From Phyllobates terribilis (taxonomy: Eukaryota), in NCBI RefSeq assembly GCF_046119375.1, contig NW_027362767.1:146692001-146756000 (forward strand): 64,000 nt of DNA. The letters run 5' to 3'. Below the pieces are notes generated by a model that was given only the letters and a program-made list of their open reading frames with translations, made no database searches and was not told where the DNA came from. Below are positions 25,101 through 64,000 of this stretch, one piece after another (positions within the stretch are counted from its first letter, which is position 1; every line of letters begins with the position of its first letter). The position numbers and the translations under genes were made by a program.

Positions 25101-28100
25101 TGCCCAACTTCACCTCAGACCTCTCCAATTAGACATTCTCAAGTCATGGGACAGGAACCCTTCTTCTCTCGACAGGAAGTTCCAGCTGACGTTGTCAACC
25201 AGGAAGTCCCTTCACTGGTGGATCAACCGGACCTCTCTAACAAAAGGGAAATCTTTTCTCCCAGGTCAATGGAAGGTCCTGACCACCGACGCAAGCCTGA
25301 CAGGTTGGGGTGCAGTACACCTACACCACAGAGCACAGGGCAAGTGGTCCCCAGCGGAAGCAACCTTGCCCATCAACATTCTGGAAATTCGTGCCATCCT
25401 CCTGGCGTTAAGAGCCTTCCATCACTTACTGGCTGCCTCCCACATCAGGGTACAGTCGGACAATGCGACGGCCGTGGCATATGTCAATCACCAAGGGGGG
25501 ACCCGCAGTGTCTGGGCGATGCAAGAAGTGACACGCATTCTTCACTGGGCAGAAAAAAACGGACTCCATTATCTCTGCGGTCTCCATTCCGGGTGTAGAC
25601 AACTGGGAAGCAGACTTCCTCAGCAGGCAAGGAATAGACTCGGGAGAGTGGGCTCTCCATCCCGAAATCTTTCAACAGATCTGCCATCGTTGGGGTACTC
25701 CTTATGTGGACCTAATGGCGTCTCACCTCAATGCCAAAATCTCCCAACTTCATGGCCAGATCACGCGACCTGCGAGCGCTAGCGGCGGACGCCCTGGTTC
25801 ATGACTGGACCCAGTTCCAGCTCCTGTACATTTTTCCACCTCTCCCCCTGATTTCCAGAGTGGTGAGAAAGATAAAACACGAGGGAGAACCAACCATTCT
25901 AATTGCACTGGACTGGCCCAGGCGTACATGATACGCCGACATCGTACGACTCACAGGAGACGTTCCCTGGCGTCTTCCCGACCGCCCGGATCTTCTATCA
26001 CAAGGCCCGTTCTACCACCAGAACTTAGAGGGCCTCAATTTGACGGCGTGGCCATTGAGACCTGGATTCTAACCCAGGCAGGTTTTTCGCCAGATGTCAT
26101 TGGAACCATGATCAGAGCACGAAAACCAACCTCGGCCAAGATTTACTACCGTACCTGGAAAGCCTTGTTTACCTGGTGCGAATCTCGTAACCAAACCCCA
26201 CTACCCTATTACCTACCCAGGGTACTCGGTTTTCTCCAATCGGGCCTGGAAGCCAGACTATCCCTGGCCTCCCTTAAGAGCCAGGTGTCAGCTCTTTCAG
26301 TGCTTTTTCAAAAGTGCATTGCTCACAAACCGCAAGCAAGAACACTCTTCAGGGGGTTTCCCGATTGGTTCCCCCCTACAGACGACAACTAGAAACGTGG
26401 GACCTCAACCTGGTGCTGACTGCATTGCAGGAATCGCCCTTTGAATCCCTTAGGGAAGTCCCACTCAGTCTTCTATCACAGAAAGTGTTTTTTTTCCTCG
26501 TGGCAATCACCTCGCTACGCAGGGTGTCTGAACTCACAGCACTCTCCTGCACACAGCCCTTCCTGATTTTTTTCCAGGATAAGGTAGTCCTCCTTACGGT
26601 TCCATCCTTCCTTCCGAAGGTTGTGTCCAACTTCCATCTCAATGAAGAAATTTCGCTACCATCCCTCTGTCCGGTTCCGGTTCATAGAGTGGAAAAGGCT
26701 TTCCATACGCTTGACCTTGTCAGGGCATTGCGTATCTATGTGTCTAGCACTGCACCCTTCCGGAAATCTGATTCTCTTTACCTCCTTCTGGAAGGTGGCC
26801 TCAAGGGTCTGCTGGCTTCTAAAGCTACCCTTGCCAGGTGGATCAGATCCACCATACAAGAGGCCTACCGCCTCAAAAATTCTCCTCTTCCAGTAGGTAT
26901 TACGGCACATTCGACACGTGCGGTAAGGGCCTCCTGGGCCATTCGGCACCAGGCTTCGGCACAAGTGTGTAAAGCAGCCACCTGGACCAGCCTACACACG
27001 TTTACCAAACACTACAGGGTTCATACCCAGTCCTCAGCAGATGCGAGCCTGGGCAGACGTGTTCTGCAGGCGGCAGTACCCTAATTATAGGGACCCGTCT
27101 ACACAATATTCGTCCATTGCTTCCCACCCAGGAACTGCTTTGGGACGTCCCAAGGTCCTGTGTCCCCCAATGAGGCGACAGAGTAAAGGAGATTTTTGTG
27201 TACTCACCGTAAAATCTCTTTCTCTTAGCCTCTAATTGGGGGACACAGCTCCCACCCTGTTGCCCTTCCGGGCCGTTAAGTTGAGTTCTCCTATTGGTTT
27301 TCCTATGAGTTCTTATATAGTTGCCTTTTCATAGGCATGGTTATGTTATCTATGTTACGTTCCTCCTACTGCTTTTGCACAAAACTGAAGATGGCTGACG
27401 CCGTCCAGGGGTGTATACTGCAGGGGAGGAGCCACAGTTAATCTTTTTCAGATTATGCATAGTGTCGCCTCCTAGTGGACAGCAGCATAACACCCAAGGT
27501 CCTGTGTCCCCTAATTAGAGGCTAAGAGAAAGAGATTTTACGGTGAGTACACAAAAATTTCCTTTTTTTTTAAAAGACCACAATATGAACAGTGCAAGCC
27601 CAATATTTAACATAAGAGGCAGGTGAAGGATCAGTGACCTGTCATTTAAGCCACAAGGATTAATATCAGAACAGAACACCAATGAAAGCCCGCCCTGGAA
27701 CACAGGCATATCATGATCTCCAAACTGCAAACACAGATTAAACAACCACAAGACGGATTTCATCAACCCAGGTATCATTTTAATCAGTGTAACGGCGCCA
27801 ACCTGACACTGCCTGTAGATTACTTATTAAAGCGAACCTGTCATCAAGATTTTGCTGTTTTACATCAAGTAACAAAATGCAAAAGAGAAAACTAAGTCAC
27901 ATCAATATTTGTTGACTGCCCTTTGCCTTCAAAATAAAATTAAAATCTTGGAGAATTCACCACAGATCTTCTGTGGATGTTGCTTGTGCTCCTTATGTGG
28001 TGACGGACAGATTGGATGATATGAGATCGTGCTCTGTGGGGGTCTCATCACTCCCAGGACTCCTTGTGCTTATAATCATCAAATGTCTGGGGTCATTTTC

Positions 28101-31100
28101 TGGTTGCAGAATAAATTTGTAGCCAATCTTATGCCTCCCTGATTGTATTACATGATGAATAAGTATCTGCCCGTACTTCTCAGCATTAAGGACTCCATTA
28201 ATCCTGGCCATATCCCCAACTCCATTTGCTGAACTTGCAGGACCCTCCAGCACGCTTCACTGTTCTTGCAGACCCTCATTATTGTGCTGCTTTCCAGCCA
28301 TTCCGTAACAAACTGCCTTCTATTACAGCCAAATATTTCACATTGTCACTCATCAGACCAGAGCACCTGCTGATGTTTTTCTGCTCCTGGTTCCTATCTT
28401 TTTGTGCATTGAGTCGCTTGGCCTCTTTTCGTGTTACAATTCCTCCATAAACACCACTTCTGGCCACACATCTCTGAACAGCAGCTGGTCCCACTGGTTG
28501 CTGCCAGTTCTGAGCTGATGGCAGTGCTGGACATCTTCCGATTTCGAAAGGGAAGTAAGCATTGTTTGCCTTTCATCTGCTGCACTAAATTACTTTGGCC
28601 GAATACTGATCTTCTTTCCTCCTCATTGCCCCTTTCTTGGTGTTTCTTCGAGATGAGCTTGAACAGCATATCTGGAAACACCTGTCTGCTGTGAAATCTT
28701 TTTTTCCTGGGAGACACCTTGCTGATGCAGTATAACTACCTTGTGTCTTGTTTGATGGCAAGACTGAGCACGGGTGTATGACCCAGGATATGAAACTGTC
28801 TTCCAAAACCTCAACTTTAGTAGAGTTTTTCTGTTCCTCACCCAGTTTAAAACCTTTTGCATAGTGGTTTCTGTTTCATTTATGACTGTGTTTCAACATA
28901 CATATGAAATCCTAGGAAAGCCCTGACTTTGTGCGAGAAGAATTGATGCTGTTTTGAAGTGAAAGGGCGTTGAGCAAATATTGATCTGATTTAGTTTTTC
29001 TCTTTTGTTCATTCACATAAGGTTTTTTGTTTTTTTTTGTTTTTTTTATCAATTAACAAAATGGAAACCCTTCTATTGTTAAAACCATTCTTACTTGGCA
29101 GTATTTTTTTCTGCCTAAAACATTTCCACTGTGCTGTGTATATCACAGTACCATCAGGGAAGCGTCTGACTCCAAATATATAATCATTTTCTACCGATCG
29201 GTTTTCTGTTTTTCTTTAAATTTTTGCAGAACCCGAGATGCTGAAGCTGTTTCATGAAGTGACAGGGTCCCACAAGAAGCACATCTCCGATACTGGAAAA
29301 GACACTCAAGCAGCCGCTCAGAAAACTTCTGGTGAGTGTATAGTATTAAGCTGTACATATACCGTATCCCCTTCCATGTTCTCCCAGTACTAATCTCCAG
29401 TAACTTACATTTTATATCATTTCTACAGCGGAGCAGGTCGCCCAGCAGCAGCTGCCTGTATCCGCTCAGAGACCTCCAGGTAACAATGTAGTAAGATAGG
29501 GGCACGCCAATCTATGGAGAAAAAATTGAAATTGCATAAAAATAGTAATGTGTGTTGGAGTTGATTCGATAACATGCAGCATATCGCACCTCTCTGTACA
29601 GAGGGGGTCTTTATTACTACAGTAGGGGGTGCAATATGCTGACAGTTTAAGGTCCCACTAAAATTCAGTTGTCCTTTTTTTTTTAAATCCCGTTAAAGGG
29701 GTCTTCTCATCCAGGTGAACACAAATACACAGCAGAATCCTTTTAATTCATGAAATAACCTTTAAATGGCTCACATTACAAGAATGTCGTAAGGCTCCAA
29801 GAAAGATGGTCAGCAGGGGTCTTTGTTGTGATTGTGGGGATGTGATATGTATGTAGAGAAGACGCTGACGGTTATGAGACCATCGGTCCTGCAGTTTCTC
29901 ACATCATTCCCATGACCGCAGCAGCCAATCTGTGGCATCAGCTGTAATGTTGGCATGCATGGCACATGATCACTGAGGTCACTGATTGGCTGCAGCGGTC
30001 ACATGAATGATGTGCAGCACATTACAGGTGCTAGGGAATTTTTGTATATTATCATGTTTCCTGTTATCATGAACATATTCTGAATCGCAGAAATCCCCTT
30101 TAAGGCCATGGCCCCACTATCAGTATTCGCTGAGTATTTTTACTCAGGAGTGGGAGACCAAACCAGGTGAGGAACAATCAGAGAAAAGGTATAATAGAAA
30201 CAAGTCACCAATTCTGCATTTATCACCCACTCCTGGTTTTGGCTCCCACTCCTGAGAAAAAATACTGACCGAATACTGATAGTGGGGCCGTGGCCATAGA
30301 TATATTTTACACCCTTCTTGCCACAGAAAAAGTTAACCAGCCTCCGCAGCTGACCAACTTTCTGAAGGCGCTGGTGGCCGGCATACCACCAGGGGTGCCA
30401 CCAGCCACTCAGAGACCTCCAGGTAAGGAAGGGATTCCTCTGGGGGGATACACAGATTCTTGTACAGATCTTACTGTAACACTGAGATTTTTTTAATCTG
30501 TCTGCAGCAGTCACTGCTCCGCAGCTCGTGCCCGGCTCCCAGAAGACGTTGGTGGCGGGTAAAGCACCAGTACAACATGCCGGCCAGAAACCTGCAGGTA
30601 ACAATATAGTAATGAAGGGATTTCTGTACATATACTGGGAACATACAGATCTCCCGATAACGCTGAGATTTTATACCGTGTGCAGCACAGAACGTCACCC
30701 CGACCCAGCAAACTCTCACGTCTCAGAAGGCACTAATGGCTGGCGTGGGGCAGCTACTTCAGCAGATTTTCCTGAGACCTCAAGGTAACTATATGGTCAT
30801 TTTCTCATGTATATCATTCACGGGGCAGATGAGAATGAGGGGTATGGCTGATGCCACTTGGCGCATACAAGTGTTAACTCCTACCAGCTATACTGGGCCG
30901 GCAGGTGCTGAGCAGAGCAATGGAATTCAGCATGTCTGATCCTTCTCTTCCCAACATCATCATCTCTGGAGGGCGGGGGCCCCCCTTGCGCGCGACGGTC
31001 AGGAGGGCGGGGGGCCCCCCTTGCGCGCGACGGTCCCCAGTGGGCCCGGGGCCAGACTAGGCCGGCATTGCCCTGTTGTGTATGGGGCCTTAGTCCTATG

Positions 31101-34100
31101 TTTCTGTTTCTCTTCTCATCCGTAGCCCCTGCTAATCATCCTAACCCAACACCCAGTCCTCAGTTTAACATCAGGGCTCCTGTGGGAGGAACCGGACCGG
31201 TCCAAGGAGCAGGTAATTGTATAATTATCCCCAGACCATAGAGTGTACATGCCAGTGTGACATTTATATACCGTCTCTTTATCTACAGTCACAGCATCTA
31301 CTACCTACCCAAGTAAGAATCCGCAGATCCCTGGCCCCAGATTTGATAATCCAAATCCCTCTAAGGAACAGCGGCCTCTCCCAGGACAAGGAGCCGGCAG
31401 GTATCCAGGTATGCTGCATCACGCTATTCCGAGGGCCGCGGTAGGAAGGGGTTCTTACTTCACCGCCCCCTGGTGTGCGTCAGTAGTTCTACCCTGCAGC
31501 TGACAAGGATGTTCCAGTAACATGCGGATTATGTTTTGGCAGCAGAGAACGTCGGCCCGTCCCATCCTGTGCCCGGTTACCAGCAGTTGCCGGGGTCCAG
31601 TACTGCACCAGTCCAACAAGCCGGTCCGGGAGCTCCAGGTAATTATCGTAGTAATGGTCTCAGATGGTTGCAATTGTAAGATCCAGTTTTGTAAATTGAA
31701 ATCCTCCCCCCTCCCTCATTACGATGCAGAGCTGCCGCTGCAGCGGCCCCTCTTGGACTTGGCCGGCAGGTTACATAATTTTTTATAAATGGCTGAGAAT
31801 GAGTTGGAAAAAAAAGATAAAGAAGTGATCCCCTCACCTACTGCCTGAGTCTGCCTGGACACACCAATACTGACCCATGTACATTTACGAGGATTACATC
31901 TGCTGTCATCTTTATAACAAATCTTGATGTTTTTGTTTTTTTTCCAGGCCCTACAACGCGTTATGCTCAGAATCCAGAGATTCCCGGGTCAAGATTTACT
32001 AATCAGGACCCCTCTAAGGAACGAAGACCTCCTTTTTTGGGACAAGTACCTGGTGGATATCCAGGTAATCTCACATCATGACTATTAATTCACACTAGCG
32101 ATGATGCTAGAACAGTTTGTAGGATCACAATATTGATTAGTGGAGTCAGATGTATGCTTCGCCTGTCTTCTGGGCATTATGCGGTACGCCCACTATTCCC
32201 TACACCTGACAGAGCAGGACCCCCCGATGACTGCCTTATGCCCTAGTAGGAGGTACAGACAGGTGGTCCAGTTGGACAATCTCTTGGTCTCATATTCTGC
32301 ACTTTGCTGATACCTCTTGCTCCCCCTAGTGGGTGACAATGGTAATACACCACTACGTACAGGAATCGTTTCCACATGTAGTTTTATTTCTGCAATTTGA
32401 CAGTAACATCAATCTCTTTATACACTTCCAGCTCCCATGAATCCCAGCCAGCCTCAACAACAAGCTGCTCCAAGCCCTCAAGGTAGCATTATATTATAAT
32501 GGTAGCAGACTAGTAATGGTGCCATTGTAAAGTGACGTGCCGCCCCCTGATGTGTAAGGGGCAGGACCCCCACAGCTTTTCTAGTCTGCCACATATTAAC
32601 TGTATACATGTTGCACCTGCATTGGACATTGTATATATTTTTCCTCCATAGACGCTTCTATTCGCTTTAACCAAAATCCGCGTTCCGGCTTTGACAGGGG
32701 ACCTGTGGATGGAGCAGGAGCAGGTACGGTGGAAGGAACGACCACTGCTCCATTAATTTCCTGAGGGGCTGCCTGATAAAGTGCAGCGCTGTACTGCTCT
32801 CATCAATGCCTTAGATAGTCCATTCAGAAGGGGGATCTGAGAGCGCTGTCTTTGTGATCGGTTGGGTCCCTGTAGTCCGACCCCAGCCATCACCTGTCTT
32901 AGGTTGTGCATTGTTATAGTGGGCCATCCCTTTAAGGTGCTATGGTGTTTGTGTCTATTGCAGAATATGGCTGCAGCCATCCATTCCCATGCACACGTAG
33001 AAGTATGTCACGTCCTCCCATCGTCTCGTAACTTCTGTGTTTTTGTGGTGCAGGTTCTGAAACGCGCTTCAGTCAAAATCAGGGACCTCCTGCATCCAGG
33101 TTTGATAATACGAATCCCCCAAAGGACCCCAAGTCTCTGATGGGACAAGCAGCGAGCAGATATCCAGGTATCCATGGTGGGTGGGGATAGATGCTCCCCA
33201 TTTGTACCACAGGGATGGTGATGATATGTGATCGGCCTCTGTTATAATTCTGTCATTCTTCGATTAGAGTCGGAGGGTCGTTATAACCAGGATGACCTGT
33301 ATTCCGGTAGCTGGACTGACAACTCGGGAGCTCGCAATAAGGCAGGACCACCATTAGGAGCAGGTGATTACTGATAGTCGCGGTCAGGACATGCCAGATG
33401 ATCCGGTATATCTCATGGTCGTATTTGGGATCTGTATTCCCATCATACTGTGCCTCCATATTGTGGTATGTCGTTATGGTGGCATATGTAGAGTATACAT
33501 GTAGCCATACACCTGACTCTTACTTTTATTAAAATCGCTTGGATGCTGCAGTAAATGCCGACTATAGCATGTAAGGGTGTTAAACAACCAAGTGACGGCA
33601 TCTGCACGGCTCTGCTGCATCATCGCTTAAACTACCTCACAAAGTGCAACATAGTCTCCGATTGGCTATTTTATTTGGACACCTGCATAGTTGGCTACTA
33701 AATATAGTGGGTGACCATATGGCCAAGCAGGGTGACGGTGAACAGCAGCCAACAATGTGCAGGGTTTTTCTGGCACCACTGTTATTACGTCTTACTGGTG
33801 TGGCAGTGCTTGGACCTCCGCTGATGGGAACATCACTCCTATAACTCCTGCCGCGTGAGAACGTCACATGCGCCCGTATTTTTTCCTCCATAGACGCTGC
33901 CAATCGTTTTAACCAAAATCCGCCTTCCCGCTTTGATGCCAGGGGACCTGTGGATGGTGCAGGAGCCGGACCAGGTATGTGTGTATATCTATCGATAGAT
34001 AGGTAATCCGTGATAGATATATATACATACATGAAGACAGCACTCCTCTTTAGAAAAAAATCAAATAAGTGATTTTAATGGCCCATAAGGGCTAAATGTG

Positions 34101-37100
34101 ACATTTCGGCTCCGAGTGTGAGCCTTTTTCAAGCAGAGCAGACCAGAGCAGCTTTTTATAGATCCAATCATTCATAGATTCATTATACAATACAGTGCTG
34201 TGTAAAGTCGTGTAGACCATTATATTTCCATACAGTTATCAGATTACAGTGCCATAAAGTGTGTGTTATTGTGAACATATAACATGATTACACACAATAC
34301 ATTAGAAACGTTTTGATTAGTATATACAGGTGTAAATACTTTAAATGGCAGGACTCACCCCATTAAATGATTAAGCCATCGCACCCAAACGGCAGCGTGT
34401 ATATTACGCAGCCCATGTCAGCGTGTTACACCAGGCAGTGACTTAATCGGGCAGCACGTCCCTGCCCTCGGAGCCATCTTTGAAAGAGTCAGTACCTCAA
34501 TGCGCAGACTCCAGGCGCGTCATAGGACTCCCGCACCATCTTGGATAAGGTCAACACCTTAATCCAAACTGCGCATGCGCCATAAAGCTCAATGATGTAA
34601 TGGATGTCCATTACAAAGGCTGTAAGTAAGCTGATAAGAACGCTCCCATGCACATGTTCTGAACATCACCATTTAAAGGAGCCCAAAAGCATAATATTTA
34701 GGTGATTTTGGTACAAGGGTAGTTTGGCAAGCACACCACTATTAGACAAGGTAACATCCCCCCATTTGCTGTGGCTGGTAAACCTATATCAACAATGATT
34801 TTGCAGAGCCATACTCCCCGTTTAGGCGCCTACTGCTCAACCCAGTCCTTTAATGGAATTTAAAGCCCGCATATATCCAGGACCCAATTATTTCAGCATA
34901 AAAACCTTTAATAACACTAGTATCACAGAAAGAACAATTAAACATCAGAGTGTTATTTATGGGTAACAACAAAGATGTGTATTTATTTATAAAAAAAAAT
35001 ATTATATTAGGTGGTAATATTGATGTGACCCGTGCCATAAATATATATCTATATTTCCAATCTAGAAGGAAAGGAAAAAAAAAAAAGATAGAGACAATTA
35101 GTATCCATGTTAAAAATCCTATCTAGACTATTTTGAACGAGAAGAACAATCCAAGGTATATCAAAGGAGACACAACATCATTAGGCTGCCAAATTGATTT
35201 TATATTCAACATTCAGTCCCTTAGGGCGCAAAGTATCAAGTCTATGAATTGATTGTAACTCCTTAATTTTTAACAATTTTACACAATCCCCACCTCTTCT
35301 CAAGGGTGGTACATGATCAATAATCCTGAATTTTACATTTTTCACTATGGCCACATTCGACAAAATGTTTTGAGACCGGGAAATCCATTTTTTTCTTATC
35401 TATGATGATTAAGCCTAGTTTTTAAATCCCATGTCGTTTTCCCCACATAAAACAAATTGCTGCGACATTGCAATAAATATATAACATATTCCGAATCACA
35501 TGTTAAATTATTATTATAATTATTTATTATAGCACCATTTGTTCCATGGCGCTTTACATGTGAAAGGGGTATACATAGCACAAACAATTACAATAAATGT
35601 TGAACAATACAAGTCGGCGACTGGTACAGGAGGAGCGAGGACCCTGCCCGCGAGGGCTCACAATCTACATAGGAAGGCTGAGGATACAGTAGGTGAGGGT
35701 AGAGCTGGTCGTGGAGCGGTGGTTACTGCAGGTTGTAAGCTTGTCGGAAGATGTGGTTCTTCAGGTTCCTTTTGAAGGTTTCAACAGTAGGCGAGAGTCT
35801 GATATGTTGGGGTATAGAGTTCCAGAGTAGGGGGGATGCACGGGAGAAATCTTGTATGTGATTGTGGGAAGAGGAGATGAGAGGAAAGTAGAGAAGGAAA
35901 TCTTGTGAGGATTGGAGGTTGCGTGCAGTGTTGTAGCGGGAGACTACAGTACAGACCAAAAGTTTGGACACAGCTTCTCATTTAAAGATTTTTCTGTATT
36001 TTCATGACTGAAAATTGTACATTCACACTGAAGGCATCAAAACTATGAATTAACACATGTGGAATTATATACTTAACAAAAAAGTGTGAAACAACTGACA
36101 ATATGTCCTATATTCTAGGTTCTTCAAAGTAGCCACCTTTTGCTTTGATGACTGCTTTGCACACTCTTGGCATTCTCTTGATGAGCTTCAAGAGGTAGTC
36201 ACCGGAAATGGTCTTCCAACAATCTTGAAGGAGTTCCCAGAGATGCTTAGCACTTGTTGACCCTTTTGCCTTCACTCTGCGGTCCAGCTCACCCCAAACC
36301 ATCTCGATTGGGTTCAGGTCTGGTGACTGTGGAGGCCAGGTCATCTGGCGTAGCACCCTATCACTCTCCTTCTTGGTCAAACAGCCCTTACACAGCCTGG
36401 AGGTGTGTTTGGGGTCATTGTCCTGTTGAAAAATAAATGATGGTCCAACTAAACACAAACCAGATGGAATAGCATGCCGCTGCAAGATGCTGTGGTAGCC
36501 ATGCTGGTTCAGTATGCCTTCAATTTTGAATAAATCCCCAACAGTGTCACCAGCAAAACACCCCCACACCATCACACCTCCTCCTCCATGCTTCACGGTG
36601 GGAACCAGGCATGTAGAGTCCATCCGTTCACCTTTTCTGTGTCGCACAAAGACACGGTGGTTGGAACCAAAGATCTCAAATTTGGACTCCTCAGACCAAA
36701 GCACAGATTTCCACTGGTCTAATGTCCATTCCTTGTGTTCTTTAGCACAAACAAGTCTCTTCTGCTTGTTGCCTGTCCTTAGCAGTGGTTTCCTAGCAGC
36801 TATTTTACCATGAAGGCCTGCTGCACAAAGTCTCCTCTTAACAGTTGTTGTAGAGATGTGTCTGCTGCTAGAACTCTGTGTGGCATTGACCTGGTCTCTA
36901 ATCTGAGCTGCTGTTAACCTGCGATTTCTGAGGCTGGTGACTCGGATAAACTTATCCTCAGAAGCAGAGGTGACTCTTGGTCTTCCTTTCCTGGGGCGGT
37001 CCTCATGTGAGCCAGTTTCTTTGTAGCGCTTGATGGTTTTTGCAACTGCACTTGGGGACACTTTCAAAGTTTTCCCAATTTTTCGCACTGACTGACCTTC

Positions 37101-40100
37101 ATTTCTTAAAGTAATGATGGCCACTCGTTTTTCTTTACTTAGCTGCTTTTTTCTTGCCATAATACAAATTCTAACAGTCTATTCAGTAGGACTATCAGCT
37201 GTGTATCCACCTGACTTCTGCACAACACAACTGATGGTCCCAACCCCATTTATAAGGCAAGAAATCCCACTTATTAACCTGACAGGGCACACCTGTGAAG
37301 TGAAGACCATTTCCGGTGACTACATCTTGAAGCTCATCAAGAGAATGCCAAGAGTGTGCAAAGCAGTCATCAAAGCAAAAGGTGGCTACTTTGAAGAACC
37401 TGGAATATAAGACATATTTTCAGTTGTTTCACACTTTTTTGTTAAGTATATAATTCCACATGTGTTAATTCATAGTTTTGATGCCTTCAGTGTGAATGTA
37501 CAAATTTCATAGTCATGAAAATACAGAAAAATCTTTAAATGAGAAGGTGTGTCCAAACTTTTGGTCTGTACTGTAGGTCACAGATGTATGGAGGAGACAG
37601 GTTGTGGATGGCTTTGTATGGCAAGGTTAGGGTTTTGAACTGGAGTCTCTGGGCAATGGGGAGCCAGTGAAGGGATTGACAGAGAGGAGAAGCGGGGAGT
37701 AGCGGGGGGACAGGTGGATTAGTCGAGCAGCAGAGTTTAGGATAGATTGGAGGGGTGCAAGAGTGTTAGAGGGGAGGCCACAAAGCAGGAGGTTGCAGTA
37801 GTCAAGGCGGGAGGTGATGAGGGCAGCACTAGTGTTTTTGCAGATTCATGGTTGAGGAATGTGCAGATCCAGGAGATATTTTTGAGTCCGAGTCGGCAGG
37901 AAGTGGAAAGGGCTTGGATATGTGGTTTGAAGGAGAGATCAGAGTCCAGGGTTACCCCGAGGCACCGAGCTTGTGGGACTGGGGAGAGTGAACAGCCATT
38001 GACGTTGATAAATAGGTCAGATGGGGGGGTTGAGTGAGACGGTGGAAAGATGATGAATTCAGTTTTATCCATGTTAAGTTTTAGAAATCTGTCAGAGAAG
38101 AAGGATGAAATAGCGGACAGACATTGTGGGATTCTGGTTAGTAAGGAGGAGATATCTGGTCCAGAGAGGTAGATCTGTGTGTCATCAGGATAGAGGTGAT
38201 ACTGAAAGCCATGAGACTCTATGAGCTGTCCCAGGCCGAAGGTGTAGATGGAGAAGAGCAGGGGTCCTAGAACTGAACCTTGGGGGACACCGACAGATAG
38301 TGGACGAGATGAGGAGGTGGTGTGTGAGTGGGAGACACTGAATGTCTGGTCTGTTAAATATAAGGAGATCCAAGATAGGGCCAAGTCTTTGATGATGAGA
38401 GTCAGTAGTAAGAGGGAATGGTCCACTGTGTCAAAGGCATTTGACAGGTCCAGGAGGAGGAGGACAGAGTAGTGTCACTTGGATTTGGTAGTTAGTAGGC
38501 CGTTGGTGACTTTAGTCAGGGCAGTTTCAGTGGAGTGATGCGGTCGGAAGCCAGATTATAAGCGGTCAAATAGGGAGCAGGAGGAGAGGTGGGAGGACAG
38601 TTCAAAATGGACATGTTCCAGCAGTTTTGAGGCGTAAGGAAGAAGTGATATGGGGCTATAGCTAGACGGAGAGGATGGGTCCAGGGGACGGCTTTTTGAG
38701 GATGGGTGTGATCGAGGCATGTTTGAAGCATGAGGGGAAGACACCGGTTGTTAGTGACAGGTTGAAAAGGTGGGTTAGGATTGGGATGAAGACTATGATG
38801 AGGTTAGGGATGAGGTGGGACGGGATTGGGTCAAGTTTCCAGGTGGTGGTGTGATTTGGAGAGTAAAGAGGAAAGTTGATTGTCCGTAATGGTGGAGAAG
38901 CTGGTTTTGGAGGAGGAGGGTTGAGTAGATATGAGGAGGGGCTGTGGGGACTTTAGGCAAAAGCTTTGTCCGATGGTGTCAATCTTCTGCTTGAAGAATG
39001 ATGCAAAGTCTTAGGCTGAGATGAGATAATAATGATTAATTGAAATTTTTGTTTCCGGAATCAGGATGTGCAAAAACATTTACCTTTCAAAAGATTAGTA
39101 CAATTAACACAATTTAGGCAAGGATAACACCCAGTCCTTTTTGCTCCTGTCAATGATGATGGTTTCAAACTCTTAAGAGGTCCTAGATCCGCATGTACAA
39201 GCCTGTCCGTAAAATTCCTAGCACGTTTAAATGAAAATAGTGGAGGATTACTATAATGTGTAACTTCAGGGATACAATTGTCTAACATTTGCCAATGCTT
39301 TTTAATAGTTCAAGCAGTTTTGCCACTCTTTTCACAATATGTCGTACATACTGGTATCCTGTTTAATGCCCTATTCCTATCAGGCCCAGCCGCCAAAAGA
39401 CTTCCACAATCTAAGGCGTTGACTTTATCTTCCCATTTTTTCAGGAGTTTTTTTTGTATAGTTCCTCTGTAAAAATTTCTAAATGATAATTTTATAATTT
39501 TGCTTTAACAGTGTCTCATCACTTACAATTCTTTTAATTCGGAGTAACTGGCTGTAAGGCAACGATTCAATCATTTTTTTTTTACTCGAAATTGAACCAG
39601 AGTACATTTTGTAGCATCATCATCCATATGGTTTAAAAACTCATGAAACAGATTCAGTTCAAGAGTTGTACCAGTCCACAGGAGGAAGACGTCGTCTATG
39701 TATCGCCACCACCTGAGCACATGGGCAAAGTGGGGTGACACATAGACGAGGGCCTCCTCCAACATGGACATCATTAAATTGGCATAAGCTGGTGCTATAC
39801 TGGCACCCATTGCTGTTCCGCGGCTTTGGACATAATAATCACTACCAAAAAGAAAGTAATTATTATTAAGTAATAACTCAAGTAGTTCAATAATAAAGTC
39901 TATACTTTTCAATGTATATTCCACATGCGTAAGCTTTTTGCTGACAGCCAAAATGCCTCTATTATGTTGGATAGAAGCATACAATGATACCACATCGATC
40001 GAGAGAACGTCACATGCTCCTGTATTTTTTTCCTCCATAGACACTGCCAATCGTTTTAACCAAAATCCGCCTCCCCGCTTTGATGCCAGGGGGGGACCTG

Positions 40101-43100
40101 TGGAGGGTGCACGAGCCGGACCAGGTATGTGTGTCTCTCTATCTATCTATATAGATGTGTGCGTACATGTTAGATTAATATAGGCCTACCCCACCCGAAC
40201 CATCTGAATATGGGGATGACCTCATTGCTTGTTGTGGTCCCTCTGTACCTCCTTGTGCCCCCAATGTGGTATAAGGTATTGGCATCACTGTAGACCTAGA
40301 GTTGCTGTATAGGCTGCATGGATGTTTCGGAGCCTCGTCTACTGTCGCTTTAATATTTTTCTACAGGTCCCATAACGCATTTCAGTCAGACTCAGCAAGT
40401 TCCTGTCTCCAGATTTGACCACCCGAATGCCTCTAAGGATCAGAGGTCTATCGTCGGGCAAACAGCGGGCAGATATCTAGGTATCTCACACATATCTGAG
40501 ATTTTTATTAGCCATATCCTTAAAGGCTTGGTGCCAACTTGGATGGGTGATAACTTATTGCTCGCTGGCGGTCTGGCCACTGGGACACAATCTCTTACTG
40601 CGCAGTCGGTGATTATATATGATTACTGTGAGACTTGACCGGCCTTGGTTATGATTTTATCATTTTTCACGTGCAGAGTCGGATGGTCGTTACAGCCAGA
40701 ATGAGCCGTATCCCGGGTCCCGAACTGACAACAATGGATCCTACGATAACACAAGACCACCATTAGGAGCAGGTAATTACTGACTGTTAGGATTGAAGAC
40801 CAAGGGTTTTTCACTGGCTAGCTGGGTCCTTTAAAAATAATCTGATCACATAGTGTCCCTGGTTTTCCTAGTGATCAGCTGTAATCTGTGGATAAACGTG
40901 GCAGTGTTAAAAATCCCTGCAGCGCCTGCAGAGGGGAAATGAAGTATTACAGTTTTCATTCATATCAATGAACTTTCCGCGTAATGTAGGACAGGAAGTG
41001 TCGTCAGGAGCGAGACACGTACCAAGAGATGATGAACAGAGGACCCCTTCTGTTAACTCAATCTGTGTTTTTGTTTTTGTACAGGCTCTGAGATGCGTTT
41101 CAGTCAGAATTCGCAAAGTTCTGCTTCTAGATTTGACAATCCAAATCCTGGTAATCAACAAAAATCCTTCATGGGACAAGAAGCAGACAGATATTCAGGT
41201 ATCCGGATTCACAGCAACACTGCTCAGTACTGCATTTTCCAAAGAATTGGTGGGGATGGTGGCGCTGAAATGGCTGTGAAGTCTAATGGTGCAGGGTATA
41301 GCACTTGGAGTGGCGGGGGTGAGGCGCAGCAACGAACAATATCCATGGTACAGCAATAGATCAGGGAGATATAAAAACATTTAGAGGTTCATGTTGGTGC
41401 GCTGACAGAACAGTTAGTGAGGATGCGGTAACTAAAAATAAATGCCTTCTTATTTTAGGGTTTTCAAAAATCACTGAGGTCAGATTCCAATTTTGGGAAT
41501 GGGTTATAAGTGATCTTTTTATAATATTTTCCTTCAGAGAGAAAAGATGTTTATTTTTAATTACCACATCCTCACTAATTCTACTGGCAGCGCACCAACA
41601 TAACCTTTAATGTTTTCAATACTGCGTTATAATATATTCCATGCTGTTGCTGTTTTTTATTAAGTGTTTTATCGCACCCGAGTGATGGAGTCACAGCTAT
41701 ACTGCTCAATAATGTCCTCCATGCTGCTGTTTTCTAGTAAAAGCAGCAGCAGGTCTGGGCTCACAGTAACACTGCTCAGTACTGTTGTAGAACAAGTACC
41801 ATGACGATGTTACTTCTAAACAGGTGCTACGTAGAGACTGCAGAGCAGCTATGACTCAGGATATCTATAGCTAGCCTCCACCCACTAGCTCAGAGACAGC
41901 TATAATTCTTTCATTCTTTGTGTACAGAGGTGGACGATCATTATAACCAGGATGACTCGTATCCCGGTACCTGGACTGAAAACAGTGGATCCCTCGATAA
42001 GACACGAGCACCATTAGGACCAGGTGATTACTGACCATCAGGATCAGAGAACCGACAGATTTATTGCTTTAGTGGTCGTCAAGGACTTCAATACTGATAG
42101 CCAAGCTATAGTATAGGTCAGCTGTATCAGATTTATTGGGGTCCTACACCCGTAACCACCACTGATCTGTTACAAAGTCCTGCGGCTGTTGAATGTGCAC
42201 AGTGTAAAGAGCCGGATCACAACAGCGCCATACACTGTGTAGTGGCCGTTCACGGTACTGACATTTTAGCTTTTATTTACTTCAATACGAGCTGATCTTC
42301 AGTACCTGAATACAGCCACAATATGGCGAATACGAACTTACTTCCCCCCCTTACTTTTCCTTTTGCATGGAGCGTACTTTACAGTTTCCTTCCAGTAGCT
42401 GTGGAGCTTAGGATCAGCTGAGGGTGCCGAATATTAATGACCTATTCTAGTTTCAGGTCATAGATGTCCTAGTAAACCACTTTAAGCTAGAACCTCTACT
42501 TCCTGAATATGTTGCCCCTTTTCTGTATCTCCATGTTTATTGTGGTATGAAGCATCGCATGCTGTTGTGTTGCTTCCAAGTATAATGGGGGCAACATAGG
42601 ACGGCACAGGAAGTCCTACGCACCAGTAGCCCTTCGATGGAGGGATTGGGTCACTGTAGTGAAGTGATTCCAGGTAAACCTATCAGAAATCCATTGATCC
42701 ATCCGTGTAGGTCTATGGGCGATCCCCGACACCATTCCATATTGATGGACTGTGGCTGTATATATTTCCTTTGCTGGTGATATGACATGTAGTATGCTTT
42801 TATCTTCATAGATCAACGAAAGGATTATAAGCCGATGTCGTGGAATAGCGGACCACCGTCCGGAAACCAGGGCTTCTATAATGAGGCGCGACCAGTTACC
42901 GGGATGGGAACGGGAAGATATGACGGTATTATTAACATGTACTATTATTGTGTGCATGATTTAAGGCTTTGGTGTCCGTGTTATTCACTGTGGGTGGATT
43001 GTGGATATTGTGGGGTCTGTATGATGGTGGGAGACATATAAATAATCACTTACTTATTTTGTCACAGACCAGTACACCCAAAACCAGTATCAGTCCCAGT

Positions 43101-43557
43101 ACAGTAGCAGTGGGTCGTATGGGGCTGGAACGGACAGACCTCCTGGTATGTATCTGACTTATCAGATTTGCATGGGGAGAGGAGTAAGCTGCTGACACAA
43201 CCCTTCACTGTGGCCACTTTTCTTGCAATCTGTGCCACACTATTAATTAAACATCCCCAATGTCTTTGGTGGAAAAACTCCTTTAACTGCAGGAAAGATT
43301 TTGGGGTTTTGGATTAGGAGGTTCAGACATCACATGTGATAGGTTTTGTGTGATAATAAGTGATAGATTTATATTAGTTCTTAAGTCTTGTATTTCGTTA
43401 TTACTTTACAGGACCACAAGGTGGCCAGCCTCAGCCTGCTGCTTCTACCGGGTACCCATCAGACGGGCGTCCAGGCACATGGCCCAGCCAGGCTCCTGCT
43501 AAACGCGGCGTTTACCCTGCTGGCATCCTCAAAAACAGGACAGCCAATCCGCCCTAA
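13151..43557 (+). CDS. 35-exon host gene, ~1169 aa: two C2H2 (matrin/U1-like) zinc fingers, RS/RD-rich region, coiled coil, modular Pro/Gly/Gln/Asn low-complexity tail (uncharacterised)
   Basis: Coding exons deduced by hand: 13151-13192, 13309-13383, 13813-13903, 14243-14379, 14570-14692, 15191-15260, 17709-18170, 18278-18317, 19441-19480, 19553-19597, 19714-19773, 20154-20306, 20811-20868, 29230-29331, 29429-29479, 30327-30422, 30508-30597, 30686-30784, 31126-31212, 31289-31408, 31543-31638, 31948-32064, 32432-32482, 32652-32723, 33054-33167, 33268-33363, 33894-33974, 40041-40124, 40367-40480, 40677-40772, 41085-41198, 41928-42023, 42812-42925, 43068-43145, 43412-43557. All have a pyrimidine tract with AG acceptor and a GT donor. 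Phases match, and the total is 3510 nt with no internal stop. Confidence 0.88.
15342..17243 (+). mobile_element. Degenerate Tc1 element in intron 6
   Basis: TA|CAGTGGCTTGCGAAAGTATTCAC start and GCAAGCCACTG|TA end. Transposase remnants: [26 protein letters not shown] (16098), [22 protein letters not shown]. Many frameshifts. Confidence 0.88.
15516..15790. mobile_element. hAT-type MITE nested in the Tc1
   Basis: TIR CAGAGCTGTGGAGTCA / TGACTCCACAGCCCTG; exact 8-bp TSD AAAAATTG at 15508-15515 and 15791-15798. Confidence 0.9.
17709..18170 (+). CDS. Exon 7: K/E-rich then RS/RD-rich segment
   Basis: 462-nt phase 1-1 exon reading [65 protein letters not shown]; acceptor CACAG, donor GTAAGC. Confidence 0.9.
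19163..19355. mobile_element. ~190-bp palindromic MITE, copy 1
   Basis: GGCCAC.GCCCC.ACTATCAGTATT.. / ..AATAGTGATAGTGGGGCCGTGGCC with TAA on both flanks; homologous to 30104-30295. Confidence 0.85.
21793..24211 (+). pseudogene. DIRS ORF1 (gag-like), fragmented
   Basis: Position in the element; C-terminal fragment [40 protein letters not shown], typical of vertebrate DIRS ORF1. Confidence 0.7.
24200..25940 (+). pseudogene. DIRS reverse transcriptase / RNase H / methyltransferase-like ORF, frameshifted
   Basis: PPVGGRL start; [17 protein letters not shown]; [14 protein letters not shown]; PYLDDLL; RNase H motifs [19 protein letters not shown] and [15 protein letters not shown]; later YIFPP. 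The motifs lie in different frames. Confidence 0.93.
25928..27084 (+). pseudogene. DIRS tyrosine recombinase, frameshifted
   Basis: [17 protein letters not shown] and TFTKHY catalytic motifs; ORF split at ~26330. Confidence 0.93.
27860..29137 (-). mobile_element. Old degenerate Tc1 remnant
   Basis: Minus-strand fragment [36 protein letters not shown]; decayed TIR-like CTGCCTAAAACATTTCCACTGTGCTG near 29111-29137. Confidence 0.6.
29230..43145 (+). CDS. Array of 21 symmetric phase 1-1 exons (exons 14-34) encoding the low-complexity tail
   Basis: Exon lengths are 102, 51, 96, 90, 99, 87, 120, 96, 117, 51, 72, 114, 96, 81, 84, 114, 96, 114, 96, 114 and 78 nt. All are multiples of 3 and all end on the first base (G) of a codon. 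Confidence 0.88.
30104..30295. mobile_element. ~190-bp palindromic MITE, copy 2, inverted relative to 19163
   Basis: Same TIRs as copy 1; the central segment is the reverse complement of copy 1 (GGTATAATAGAAACAAGTCACCAATTCTGC). Confidence 0.85.
35947..37573 (-). mobile_element. Tc1-related DD38E (Intruder-type) transposon, full length
   Basis: TIR CAGTACAGACCAAAAGTTTGGACAC of ~270 bp with TA on both flanks. Confidence 0.95.
36108..37160 (-). CDS. Transposase, 350 aa, uninterrupted ORF, DD38E spacing, first catalytic Asp read as Glu
   Basis: Paired-like HTH, GRPR, WSEESK (normally WSDES), [17 protein letters not shown]; 38 residues between D and E. Confidence 0.92.
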   Translation of the reverse strand: MARKKQLSKEKRVAIITLRNEGQSVRKIGKTLKVSPSAVAKTIKRYKETGSHEDRPRKGRPRVTSASEDKFIRVTSLRNRRLTAAQIRDQVNATQSSSSRHISTTTVKRRLCAAGLHGKIAARKPLLRTGNKQKRLVCAKEHKEWTLDQWKSVLWSEESKFEIFGSNHRVFVRHRKGERMDSTCLVPTVKHGGGGVMVWGCFAGDTVGDLFKIEGILNQHGYHSILQRHAIPSGLCLVGPSFIFQQDNDPKHTSRLCKGCLTKKESDRVLRQMTWPPQSPDLNPIEMVWGELDRRVKAKGSTSAKHLWELLQDCWKTISGDYLLKLIKRMPRVCKAVIKAKGGYFEEPRI

Positions 43558-47414: not shown

Positions 47415-47629
47415 NNNNNNNNNNNNNNNNNNNNNNNNNNNNNNNNNNNNNNNNNNNNNNNNNNNNNNNNNNNNNNNNNNNNNNNNNNNNNNNNNNNNNN
47501 NNNNNNNNNNNNNNNNNNNNNNNNNNNNNNNNNNNNNNNNNNNNNNNNNNNNNNNNNNNNNNNNNNNNNNNNNNNNNNNNNNNNNNNNNNNNNNNNNNNN
47601 NNNNNNNNNNNNNNNNNNNNNNNNNNNNN
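47415..47629. other. Assembly gap (215 N)
   Basis: Run of N with AT-rich flanks. Confidence 1.
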
Positions 47630-61900: not shown

Positions 61901-63509
61901 CTTAAGAAGATAGAGAGAAATGAGGATCAGGACAGTGCATAGAGATGGAAGTGAGGAGAAACTGGAGCTGGGATAAGATGCATCGTTAGCTATCATTGTG
62001 CCAGAACTTGAGATGTGGAAGAGAAAGGGAGAAAAAGCGCGCTATGTGAAGGACCTGATAGGTAGATGTGAAGGAAACAGCCAAAAGGCCACTCACCTAT
62101 TGGAGTTGTGCACCCCTGCACAACTCCGGTGTTAGTGTGAGGATGGAAGGAGCAGGCACATCTCACCGCAAGGTACAGGTAGCTTGGCACACCACGTGCC
62201 GTGTGCTGCAGACCGCCGCTCGTGCTCACCGCTTTCAGGTTCCAAAACTGCAGGCCACGTGTCCGTCCACAGATCACGTGACTCAGGATCAGATGTGCAT
62301 CACCACAGGTCCTGAAAGTTAGGAGAGTGCAGCCCCCAGCCGCAGGTCCTGAGTTGAGCAGCCAAAGGGGAATTTTATAGTGGGGGGATTTAAGAATGAT
62401 TAACTAGAAGCTGCTCCTGCCGCTAACCCCCAAAGGGGGACTGAAAGTGGTCCAAATTAAATAAAAAAGCGGTCTATAGGGCGCTAGAAGAATGAACACT
62501 AGAGGTGAAAATTTTTTTTTTAGGGCTAAAAAATACATTTAATGAGTCCTTTCCACATCGCGTTTCGATAGTGAACTATCTTCCTCAGGTGGTACAATTT
62601 TTATTTAATTTGGAGAACTTGAGATGTAGCGCAGGCACAATATCTGACGCAAGTTTTAATAAATCAGTCGGCAATATAGTGATTCTGTCTCATCCACGTA
62701 TCCCACTAACTTTAAACAAGAAGTTGAAAGCTGACAGATATTTGAGCAAATGTGACAAAATTTTGTTTCACCAAAAATAAGTGGAGGGGAACAAACGATC
62801 ATTTGTACAAACCCTCGTTCCAAATCACTGCTATATGAACATGAAAGTAAAGGGGCGCAGATCTTCTTCCTAAATCACTGATTGGCTCTCATTACAGGCA
62901 GCTTATCTATGAAAAAAGACCCTCTGAGGGCTTGAGGTCTGGGCTAAAAAGGTAATGGGCCTCTTACTATCCTCCACAGTTATAACAGCTTGAGCAAAAC
63001 TTAGCTCCTAATATTTTCAAGCACTATTATGTGGTTTTGCATAAGACTCTAATGATAGCACCAATTTCTATATAGGACAGTGGTATTGTTGCATCGGTCA
63101 CTTCAGCTTCTTGTGGCCTGCTAAGTGGTGCTGTGTATACGCTCCAGGCTTCGCACCCATAAGGGCACAACATGTGCACTAGGCAGCTTTCACAGCTGAG
63201 CGGTATTAGCAATGCATTCCTCTACGTGACAGGCCAAACGGCACAGTTAATACCCTAAGCTAGTGAGACAGATGGGAGGTAGATTGCAGTTCGGCCATTT
63301 AAAGCAGGACACATATGACGCACACATGCAGCATGGTTGTATCACCAATACTTCAGATGTGTCAGGACAATTGCTAACAAGATATGCGTCTTACCACTAA
63401 CCTGGAAGTGACTTAAAAAAACGTTTTGTCCATATTATGGGAAATCTATGGGTCAGTGATTCCTAAAACACTTGTCCTGAGCATACAAATCTCAACTCCC
63501 TAACATATA

Positions 63510-64000
63510 CAGTACAGACCAAAAGTTTGGACACACCTTCTCATTTAAAGGTTTTTCTGTACTTTCATGACTATGAAAATTATACATTCACACTGAAGGC
63601 ATCAAAACTATGAATTAACACATGTGGAATTATATACTTAACAAAAAAGTGTGAAACAACTGAAAATATGTCTTATATTCTAGGTTCTTCAAAGTAGCCA
63701 CCTTTTGCTTTGATGACTGCTTTGCACACTCTTGGCATTCTCTTGATGAGCTTCAAGAGGTAGTCACTGGAAATGGTCTTCCAACAATCTTGAAGGAGTT
63801 CCCAGAGATGCTTAGCACTTGTTGGCACTTTTGCCTTCACTCTGCGGTCCAGCTCACCCCAAACCATCTCGATTGGGTTCAGGTCTGGTGACTGTGGAGG
63901 CCAGGTCATCTGGCGTAGCACCCCATCACTCTCCTTCTTGGTCAAATAGCCCTTACACAGCCTGGAGGTGTGTTTGGGGTCATTGTCCTGTTGAAAAATA
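63510..64000 (-). mobile_element. Second DD38E Tc1 copy, cut by the window end
   Basis: TA|CAGTACAGACCAAAAGTTTGGACAC; the C-terminal transposase fragment (63673-63945) is nearly identical to 36108-36380. Confidence 0.95.

Follow-up and report, generated by a model that had tools for sequence, protein, structure and literature searches.

The window, a 64,000-nt stretch of Phyllobates terribilis DNA, contains exons of a repeat-rich gene whose product is an uncharacterised protein (XP_073495505). The exons follow an A-B-C rhythm, and the A exons belong to a disordered repeat domain. An A-A doublet occurs once in the host protein, in agreement with a previous reading of the letters alone (hereafter the sequence-only reading), which had described it as the sole doublet in the rhythm. 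The two exons of the doublet, A2 and A3, lie in the two copies of a duplicated segment of ~150 bp. The 6 kb between the copies consist of a minus-strand, 5'-truncated Penelope-like element (PLE) in which a LINE and a Tc1 element are nested. The spliced product was taken from the database protein P0001, not from newly joined exons, and a profile of five B exons served as the query of the exhaustive protein search. The features, with positions in the window, are:

33268-33363, + strand: exon C, upstream of the A-A doublet, phase 1-1 (exon model, translation contained in P0001)
33854-34001, + strand: duplicated segment, copy 1 (37 bp of intron, exon A2, ~27 bp of intron)
33894-33974, + strand: exon A2, 81 nt, 27 codons, phase 1-1, protein sequence ancestral-like
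34002-34036, no strand assigned: low-complexity junction of (GATA/TA/TACA)-type, 35 nt, origin uncertain
34037-35496, - strand: Penelope-like element, 3' part (terminal piece, spacer and GIY-YIG remnant)
~34037-34185, - strand: multi-copy terminal piece of Penelope, from DNA-run depth
~34186-35180, - strand: single-copy spacer or 3' UTR, ~1 kb between the terminal piece and the GIY-YIG stop codon, membership in the element unproved
35181-35496, - strand: GIY-YIG endonuclease coding remnant with one frame break
35497-35943, - strand: nested L2/CR1-type LINE, 3' end with hyper-abundant tail (DNA-contig depth 1e5-1e6 from ~35442 on)
35944-37576, - strand: nested Tc1/mariner inside the LINE, with 275-bp inverted ends (HTH_Tnp_Tc3_2, DDE_3)
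37577-39030, - strand: nested LINE body, 5'-truncated, C-terminal half of the reverse transcriptase (Pfam RVT_1, E 1.4e-15 on 37737-38426), junction good to about 20 bp
39031-40002, - strand: Penelope-like element, 5' part, reverse transcriptase (RT) from just before D-V-x-S-L-Y through Y-I-D-D to the Cys-rich linker, truncated within the RT domain
40000-40151, + strand: duplicated segment, copy 2 (38 bp of intron, exon A3, ~27 bp of intron), overlapping the Penelope 5' end by 0-3 bp
40041-40124, + strand: exon A3, 84 nt, 28 codons, phase 1-1, bearing each of the four substitutions and the additional Gly
40367-40480, + strand: exon B, downstream of the A-A doublet (exon model, translation contained in P0001)

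The extent of the segment was determined by sequence comparison within the window. The stretches 33854-33996 and 40000-40146 were 90.5% identical over 147 columns (E 1e-51), and their alignment was still readable as far as ~34001/40151. The sequence-only reading had placed the copies at 33857-~34010 and from ~40008; the repeat itself was real, but copy 2 started at 40000-40003 and the homology ended at ~34001/40151. An extension of the duplication to TACATG at 34031-36/40165-70 aligned no better than shuffled sequences (125/500). Since homology as far as ~34036/40170 did not beat the shuffles, significant homology stops at ~34001/40151. No homology was found between the left flank of copy 1 and the left flank of copy 2, and a search beside the element for upstream-intron sequence, which the splitting of a larger tandem unit should have left there, gave nothing significant. 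The next-best copy of the exon was A1 (32638-32724), which was 88% identical over the exon only and did not have the intron flanks in common. The remaining exon repeats of the gene were 71-88% identical, again with intron flanks not common to them.

In both copies of the segment, the acceptor (..TTTTTCCTCCATAG/AC) and the donor (CAG/GTATGTGTGT) were intact and phase 1-1 could be read, as had been proposed for splice sites and frame. A2 and A3 differed by four substitutions (33896 G>A, 33926 T>C, 33955 T>G and 33962 G>C), which change A>T, S>P, D>E and G>R, respectively, and A3 had an additional GGG, corresponding to one more Gly. The same set of four non-synonymous differences and an in-frame Gly had been listed from the sequence alone. 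The divergence of the exon (4.9%) was roughly equal to that of the upstream flank (5.4%). Under neutrality, the probability that 4/4 substitutions are non-synonymous is about 0.24-0.30, which is not significant and bears out the earlier caution that the numbers were too small for a claim of selection.

Both exon copies are in frame and present in mature mRNA. RefSeq isoforms X1 and X2 contain both A2 and A3, isoform X3 skips A2, and A3 is included in all three. In RNA contigs, a GT..AG joint (33361>33892) linked exon C to A2, and A2 was spliced directly onto A3 in contigs of three studies (runs X9, X11 and X17). The A2>A3 junction was read off contigs aligned back to A2, in which it appears as a 33972>33892 joint that 'goes back 81'. 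Inclusion of both exons or of either one in a mutually exclusive manner had been suggested as a check; the isoforms X1/X2 and the RNA contigs of the three studies showed both, in tandem. The diagnostic letters of A3 were present in RNA and in the DNA of a second individual. In the independent DNA sample X5, both exon versions occurred at single-copy depth (14.7 and 19.3), and a contig spanned 32400 through A2 to 34029.

At the orthologous position between exons C and B, every RefSeq isoform (protein model) of Dendrobates tinctorius, Ranitomeya variabilis and R. imitator had one A exon. The sequence-only reading had held that both A exons in species without the insertion would speak against it; these three dendrobatids, considered as protein models only, had a single A. 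Their exon agreed with A2 at 4/4 differing residues, and every change thus falls in A3 (outgroup polarity; 0.125, two-sided). The Ala in FDARG was common to A2 and A3, and the relatives have Thr. Phyllobates is the sister group of Dendrobates and Ranitomeya, so that, by the number of events alone, one gain is as parsimonious as one loss. The Dendrobates orthologue had four extra B-C pairs, indicating that exon copy number is labile by other routes, and distant frog orthologues (Dendropsophus, Leptodactylus, Rhinoderma) had their own runs of A-like units. A word search with P0001 residues 831-1030 recovered no transcript fragments of closer relatives.

The RT of the Penelope-like element was matched by Pfam RVT_1 on 39571-40050(-) (E 2.7e-6, 27.7 bits, cut-off 29.6), with coverage restricted to positions 62-166 of the 205-position profile. 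Nothing of positions 1-61 or further upstream was present, and the element is therefore 5'-truncated. The motifs D-V-V-S-L-Y and Y-I-D-D were read directly. A PLE-type fragment of R. imitator (P0021), to which the RT was 64% identical across 74 residues, also has the motif Y-x-L-P-K-I-H-K / P-G-R-x-I-V-S. A Cys-rich zinc-finger linker at ~39150-39060(-) was located on the same strand, ahead of a GIY-YIG domain recognised by Pfam on 35396-35587(-) (E 1.5e-4, 22.4 bits, cut-off 22.6), of which the C-terminal conserved stretch, read directly, ends in P-K-G-L-N. Both the RVT_1 and the GIY-YIG scores lay at threshold because the Penelope copy is broken. With a PLE-type RT, a Cys-rich linker and, C-terminally, the GIY-YIG domain on one strand, the element classifies by its sequence as a PLE (EN+). 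A hammerhead in the Penelope tail was not matched in Rfam at gathering score or E<=10, 34085-34175(-) did not fold better than shuffled sequences, and no internal terminal repeat or pseudo-LTR was found in the Penelope copy. As this copy is old and 5'-truncated, a missing hammerhead or pseudo-LTR is weak evidence. The C-terminal ORF of the nested LINE was located at 35723-35971. The Tc1 element inside the LINE had an intact ORF of 350 aa (36108-37160) and inverted repeats (I1 and I2) that were 98% identical. The window contained a 97% copy of Tc1 sequence at 63508-64000.

The contact between repeat and element was flush within 0-3 bp at the 5' end. The RT frame, read downward from 40002 (S-I-D-V-V-S-L-Y), reached 40002, and copy 2 began at 40000-40003; the start of copy 2 had been recognised from the sequence alone as the truncation point of the Penelope RT. 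At the other side, the multi-copy terminal piece was ~35 bp of low-complexity sequence away from copy 1. The Penelope 3' terminus was located by depth and contig breaks, not to the base. Depth in the DNA run was 17.7 at 34389-35207, 24 and 28 closer to the end, 125 at 34038-34154 and 40 at 33921-34037, and DNA contigs broke at 34029/34069. A 5'-truncating retroelement is expected to show such a climb at its 3' end, here toward ~34037. The Penelope body was single-copy at 85% likeness, and the pile-up was limited to the last ~150 nt. The low-complexity junction may derive from decay of the duplication's end, from the 3' microsatellite of a retroelement or from a 30-40-bp PLE 'tail'; PLE tails are ~31-40 bp long (PMC8557442, PMC3846280). 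In some PLE families the terminal repeat is preceded by a unique spacer of 0.9-1.5 kb, and 31-bp tails and microhomology at 5' junctions have been described in PLEs (PMC3846280). A flush 5' end and a 3' end that ~35 bp of low-complexity sequence set apart from the repeat are compatible with a target-site duplication.

We consider it probable that a target-primed insertion, with the second nick ~150 bp off, produced a long target-site duplication holding the whole exon. A large target-site-like duplication that added an exon had been proposed by the sequence-only reading; it is supported by the single A exon in the protein models of relatives, the splicing of both exons and the insertion geometry. 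In favour of an origin by insertion, the sequence between the copies was transposon-derived or element tail (the ~1-kb single-copy spacer being unproved). We infer that the insertion caused the duplication, and likewise infer where the first nick lay and how the duplication became fixed. The Penelope-like element would have landed antisense in the intron region around exon A, with a nick in the + strand about 30-60 bp downstream of the exon, the 3'-OH of which would prime cDNA from the Penelope 3' end. The opposite strand would then have been cut ~150 bp away, 37 bp upstream of exon A, and filling-in of the two long single-stranded overhangs would have duplicated acceptor, exon and donor. The cDNA, 5'-truncated within the RT domain, would have been joined to copy 2, possibly by a microhomology of a few bases (CG.GAGAAC). 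Owing to the symmetry of the exon (phase 1-1, 81 nt) and the presence of separate splice sites in the two copies, A2 and A3 are spliced in tandem and add 28 residues to the disordered repeat domain. The LINE inserted later into Penelope, and Tc1 into the LINE. The target duplications so far reported for PLEs are short (8-10 bp in Adineta; PMC3846280), which counts against an origin by insertion. So do the low-complexity gap at the 3' end, the spacer of unproved membership, the missing hammerhead, the equal parsimony of a gain and a loss, the lability of exon number in this gene and the fact that the relatives' single A was seen in protein models.

Repair of a double-strand break whose ends had been resected or unwound over a long distance, with capture of Penelope cDNA and possibly of ~1 kb of other DNA in place of two staggered nicks by the element, is an unlikely alternative for which several observations can be cited: the 5' end of the element is truncated and may be joined through microhomology; a 1-kb single-copy stretch lies in the Penelope tail; and both repair-mediated local duplications including exons (PMC2671141) and host-DNA capture in PLEs (PMC3846280) are documented. 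However, the element faces one copy with its 3' end and the other with its truncated 5' end, which is the target-primed pattern. The present data do not separate this capture from the target-primed model. We regard it as quite improbable that exon A was first duplicated in tandem over ~150 bp, by slippage or unequal exchange (leaving a 67-nt intron), and that Penelope inserted later at the junction of the copies. Frequent changes in exon copy number of this gene in dendrobatids, A-like runs in other frogs and a 3' junction that is not placed to the base would agree with this order of events, but Penelope would have had to hit one particular junction to within about 3 bp, no remnant of the upstream intron adjoined the element, and other expansions in the gene family copied whole exon-intron units rather than 150-bp pieces.

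The short length of the similar tract is the sole point in favour of A2 and A3 being old duplicates that were homogenised across 150 bp by gene conversion, with the transposon block being incidental. Given the single A at this position in three relatives, a left edge of the tract that coincides with the transposon end and no older homology past the tract, such a history is very improbable. The interval is rich in repeats, around which two haplotypes of one exon might have been stitched in assembly. This artefact has next to no probability and was refuted by sample X5, in whose DNA both versions were at single-copy depth, and by the RNA contigs from three studies that run from A2 into A3. Two further candidates were rejected. 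A template switch of the RT onto host pre-mRNA would give host sequence in the same sense as the element, and the host sequence is antisense to it. Unequal crossing-over between flanking transposon copies was discarded because no Penelope sequence was found upstream of A2 or downstream of A3.

Exon duplication is usually attributed to unequal recombination. We found a single well-documented case in which an exon was copied by the long target-site duplication of a retroelement, a de novo L1 insertion that caused disease in one patient. At the frog locus, the copied exon is symmetric and in frame, and the gene therefore tolerated the copy. A2 and A3 are both expressed and their divergence has begun; the extra 28 residues may be of importance to the protein. 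If the target-primed origin is true, a GIY-YIG Penelope was able to set two cuts at a distance of ~150 bp, well in excess of the usual reports of 8-40 bp. It is conceivable, albeit doubtful, that long retroelement target-site duplications are a recurrent and overlooked source of symmetric exons in transposon-rich giant amphibian genomes, and that A3, which is constitutive in the annotated isoforms and holds all five changes, is diverging here under altered selection while the ancestral-like A2 is now skippable. A genome-wide tally of long flanking repeats would provide a measure of the transposon contribution to modular, repeat-built protein domains.

Among known systems, R9 in rotifer rDNA reportedly makes exceptionally long target duplications (Gladyshev & Arkhipova 2009, listed in PMC8557442), regularly at one rDNA site. 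It resembles the event proposed for the frog locus in a distant second-strand cut and a duplication of at least 100 bp, and involves no host exon. The same likeness holds for ZfL2-2, which gave a 1228-bp duplication in DT40 cells once in 25 cell-culture events (PMC2666801), with a second-strand cut far from the first nick and again no host exon. With canonical PLEs, the frog element shares an RT with C-terminal GIY-YIG, a Cys-rich linker and 5' truncation; variable target duplications and an optional 30-40-bp tail are also canonical traits (PMC8557442, PMC3846280). The length of PLE target duplications varies because the second cut varies (PMC8557442). In contrast to the short duplications of canonical PLEs, that of the frog is ~150 bp, and no hammerhead or pseudo-LTR was detectable in the decayed copy. 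Capture of proximal DNA during repair can place a whole exon with its splice sites in an adjacent intron by local duplication (PMC2671141). They differ from the frog locus in that the copies are not separated by a retroelement and target-site geometry is missing.

The closest counterpart is the L1 insertion in human CDKL5, in which a 119-bp target-site duplication copied exon 3, and the copied exon is spliced (Hiatt et al. 2021, PMC8087252). Both loci have an intronic, 5'-truncated retroelement and a direct duplication of >100 bp with a whole small exon and its splice sites. The CDKL5 event was de novo, frame-shifting and pathogenic, and was caused by an APE-type L1. In contrast, the frog duplication is in frame (81/84 nt), is associated with a GIY-YIG Penelope-like element, is about 8-10% diverged and was found in two individuals under two species labels. 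The type of mechanism is thus already known from CDKL5, and the frog locus would be a fixed, in-frame and Penelope-made example of it. By this analogy, it looks like the evolutionary outcome of a CDKL5-type accident.

Two copies of a segment carrying exon A of a repeat-built gene with A, B and C exon units were found as a direct repeat at 33854–33996 and 40000–40146 (90.5% identity over 147 columns, E 1e-51) by reading the sequence of 33700–34300 and 39800–40400 and by repeat searches. The alignment was legible as far as ~34001/40151, past which similarity was not above that of shuffled sequence. The left flanks of the two copies shared no similarity, because a transposon occupies the left side of copy 2. 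In each copy, the 5' intron part (37–38 nt, with a polypyrimidine tract and AG) was followed by one of two exons:

33894–33974, plus strand: exon A2, 81 nt
40041–40124, plus strand: exon A3, 84 nt

Each exon closed with a CAG/GTATGTGTGT donor; low-complexity sequence of GATA/TATC type (~17 nt) came next. From A2 to A3 there were four substitutions and one GGG insertion, which in the gene's frame amount to A>T, S>P, D>E, G>R and an additional Gly. Exons from 29230 to 43145 were phase 1-1 throughout. The sequence-only reading had described an exon segment duplicated on either side of a Penelope insertion, four exclusively non-synonymous substitutions plus an in-frame Gly, and intact splice sites and frame in both copies; all of this was recovered, the splice sites also as joints in RNA.

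A profile built from five B exons was run against a representative protein library and found a 1207-aa protein (P0001), according to a word search an uncharacterised protein of Phyllobates terribilis, isoform X2 (XP_073495505.1). Containment checks confirmed that it includes the translation of every window exon, and this database protein was used as the gene model. Pfam detected a weak matrin-type zinc finger close to its N-terminus and nothing else. The unit order of the repeat domain was A B. B. A B C A A B C B C; the A-A doublet is thus unique within the protein, as had been read from the A-B-C rhythm of the exons. RefSeq isoforms X1 and X2 differ by one Ala, which is accounted for by a NAGNAG acceptor at 31534–31545 (..TTTTGGCAGCAG/AGAACG). 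Annotated isoforms of Dendrobates tinctorius and Ranitomeya variabilis show this +/-Ala pair too, so that conservation of the tandem acceptor seems likely. The intron upstream of exon A0 contained a 35-bp GC-rich unit twice (30968–31035, 97%).

Reads and contigs were mapped onto 32400–35900 at 85% likeness, whereby A3-derived sequence falls on A2. The RNA-like runs came from three studies, one run each: X9 and X11 for organism A, and X17 for a second species label. Each of them showed GT..AG joints C''>A1>B>C>A2, with intron depth nearly nil, and a joint from 33972 back to 33892 ('goes back 81'), which is A2 spliced straight to A3. The earlier question of joint versus mutually exclusive inclusion was thereby answered in favour of both exons in 3/3 runs. 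All four A3 letters were present in contigs of X11 and X17; in X9 the joint and the GGG insertion were seen, and A3 letters counted zero. RefSeq X1 and X2 include A2 and A3, X3 (P0014, XP_073495506.1) skips only A2 and keeps the derived A3, and none of the annotated isoforms skips A3. In DNA run X5, from a sample other than the assembly's, both exon versions had the depth of single copies (14.7 and 19.3), with a single contig spanning 32400 through A2 to 34029.

Protein models of D. tinctorius, R. variabilis and R. imitator had one A exon only in every isoform, with the C and B exons known from Phyllobates on either side, as the sequence-only reading had predicted for relatives lacking the Penelope; from these gene models we infer an empty site. 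The relatives' A matched A2 at 4/4 differing sites, without the extra Gly, so by parsimony all post-duplication changes lie in A3. The Ala of F-D-A-R-G is common to A2 and A3, and relatives have Thr there. Exon number was also labile outside the doublet: the D. tinctorius orthologue (P0007) had five near-identical B-C pairs at residues ~795–1144 versus one in Phyllobates (four extra), the Ranitomeya orthologues (P0008/P0009) had additional B units upstream, and distant frogs had A-like unit runs of their own. Recent changes in exon copy number have occurred in each genus.

Under neutrality, four non-synonymous changes out of four have P of about 0.24–0.30; the two-sided value for all of them lying in the same copy is 0.125. 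At 4.9%, the exons have diverged as much as the upstream flank in the intron (5.4%). Selection cannot be claimed, in agreement with the earlier judgement that the changes were too few, and free drift of A3 within a disordered repeat is compatible with the data.

From ~34037 to 40002, sequence reading, ORFs and Pfam indicated mobile DNA on the minus strand over the whole length:

from 40002 downward, minus strand: Penelope RT frame with D-V-V-S-L-Y and Y-I-D-D motifs, then a Cys-rich linker
~39030 to 35497, minus strand: nested 5'-truncated LINE (L2/CR1-type) interrupting the Penelope
35944–37576, minus strand: Tc1 splitting the LINE, 98% inverted ends, intact 350-aa ORF
35496 to 35181 (stop), minus strand: resumed Penelope frame, GIY-YIG motif (Pfam E 1.5e-4)
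after this stop, ~1.1 kb: Penelope tail

The RVT_1 match spanned only profile positions 62–166, so the Penelope is truncated within its RT, which was 64% identical to a R. imitator fragment (P0021) having upstream motifs of Penelope-like elements (PLEs) that are absent from this copy. EN+ PLEs are defined by RT, Zn-finger linker and C-terminal GIY-YIG (PMC8557442), all present here. The tail resembles those Penelope families with a unique 0.9–1.5-kb spacer from ORF to terminal repeat (PMC3846280). No hammerhead was found in the Penelope copy. The nested LINE tail (35442–35900) was hyper-abundant, with a summed contig depth of 1e5–1e6 in the DNA run and 1e4–1e5 in the RNA runs, and its contigs had numerous joints between copies, both internal deletions and 'goes back' joints. 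The Tc1/mariner elements are young: the nested transposase ORF is uninterrupted, and a Tc1 end at the window edge (63508–64000) was 97% identical to that of the nested Tc1. A third Tc1-type ORF (300 aa) lay at 2118–3020, and an open frame of 468 aa at 24376–25782, upstream of the repeat exons, contained an RNase H domain of the LTR-retrotransposon kind. A run of N at 47415–47629 is an assembly gap or masked stretch.

The Penelope 5' junction was flush, with the Ser codon of S-I-D-V-V at 40000–40002 and the repeat starting at 40000 (CG) or 40003 (GAGAAC); copy 2 does begin at the truncation point, as first noticed. Since the GAGAACGTCAC at this junction is also present upstream of A2, a transposon-free spot, the junction bases are target DNA. 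The 3' junction was blurrier. In X5, the Penelope tail body was at single-copy depth (17.7 across 34389–35207); depth climbed to 24, 28, then 125 in 34038–34154, and dropped to 40 in 33921–34037, of which ~26–34 was accounted for by A2 and A3 contigs. Contigs broke at 34029 and restarted at 34069. A 5'-truncating retroelement that ends near 34037, with its last ~150 nt as the commonest part, gives this pattern. The low-complexity 35 nt at 34002–34036 could be a decayed duplication end, a 3' microsatellite or a Penelope-type 'tail', described as 30–40 bp long (PMC8557442; PMC3846280).

The element is antisense; copy 1 adjoins its 3' end, and copy 2 its truncated 5' end. Probably, the Penelope insertion itself made a ~150-bp target-site duplication with the whole exon. 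Given this orientation, the plus strand would have been nicked just past the exon's donor region, and the nick would have primed cDNA synthesis (target-primed reverse transcription). Cleavage of the minus strand ~150 bp leftward and fill-in of the two overhangs would then have doubled the interval. It is accepted that a second-strand cut at varying distance causes both variable PLE duplications (PMC8557442) and long LINE duplications (1228 bp in 1/25 events; PMC2666801).

Target-primed insertion explained the locus better than most of its rivals. An independent 150-bp tandem duplication with later Penelope insertion is improbable, as the element would have had to land <=3 bp from the duplication junction. 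Gene conversion between old A copies is contradicted by the single A in three relatives. Unequal exchange between flanking transposons was excluded since the doublet has no flanking transposon copies, RT switching onto host pre-mRNA by the element's orientation, and an assembly artefact by the X5 depth of both versions together with the A2-A3 joints in RNA. Capture of Penelope cDNA at a resected break fits these data as well as target priming does, and we regard it as unlikely.

The closest known case to the proposed target-site duplication comes from human CDKL5, where the 119-bp target-site duplication of a de novo L1 insertion took in the 35-bp exon 3 and was spliced into mRNA (PMC8087252). 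The anatomy is the same. In contrast to CDKL5, the element here is a Penelope, the duplicated exon is in frame, the event is old (~8–10% divergence, two later nested insertions), and it is common to two individuals and two species labels.
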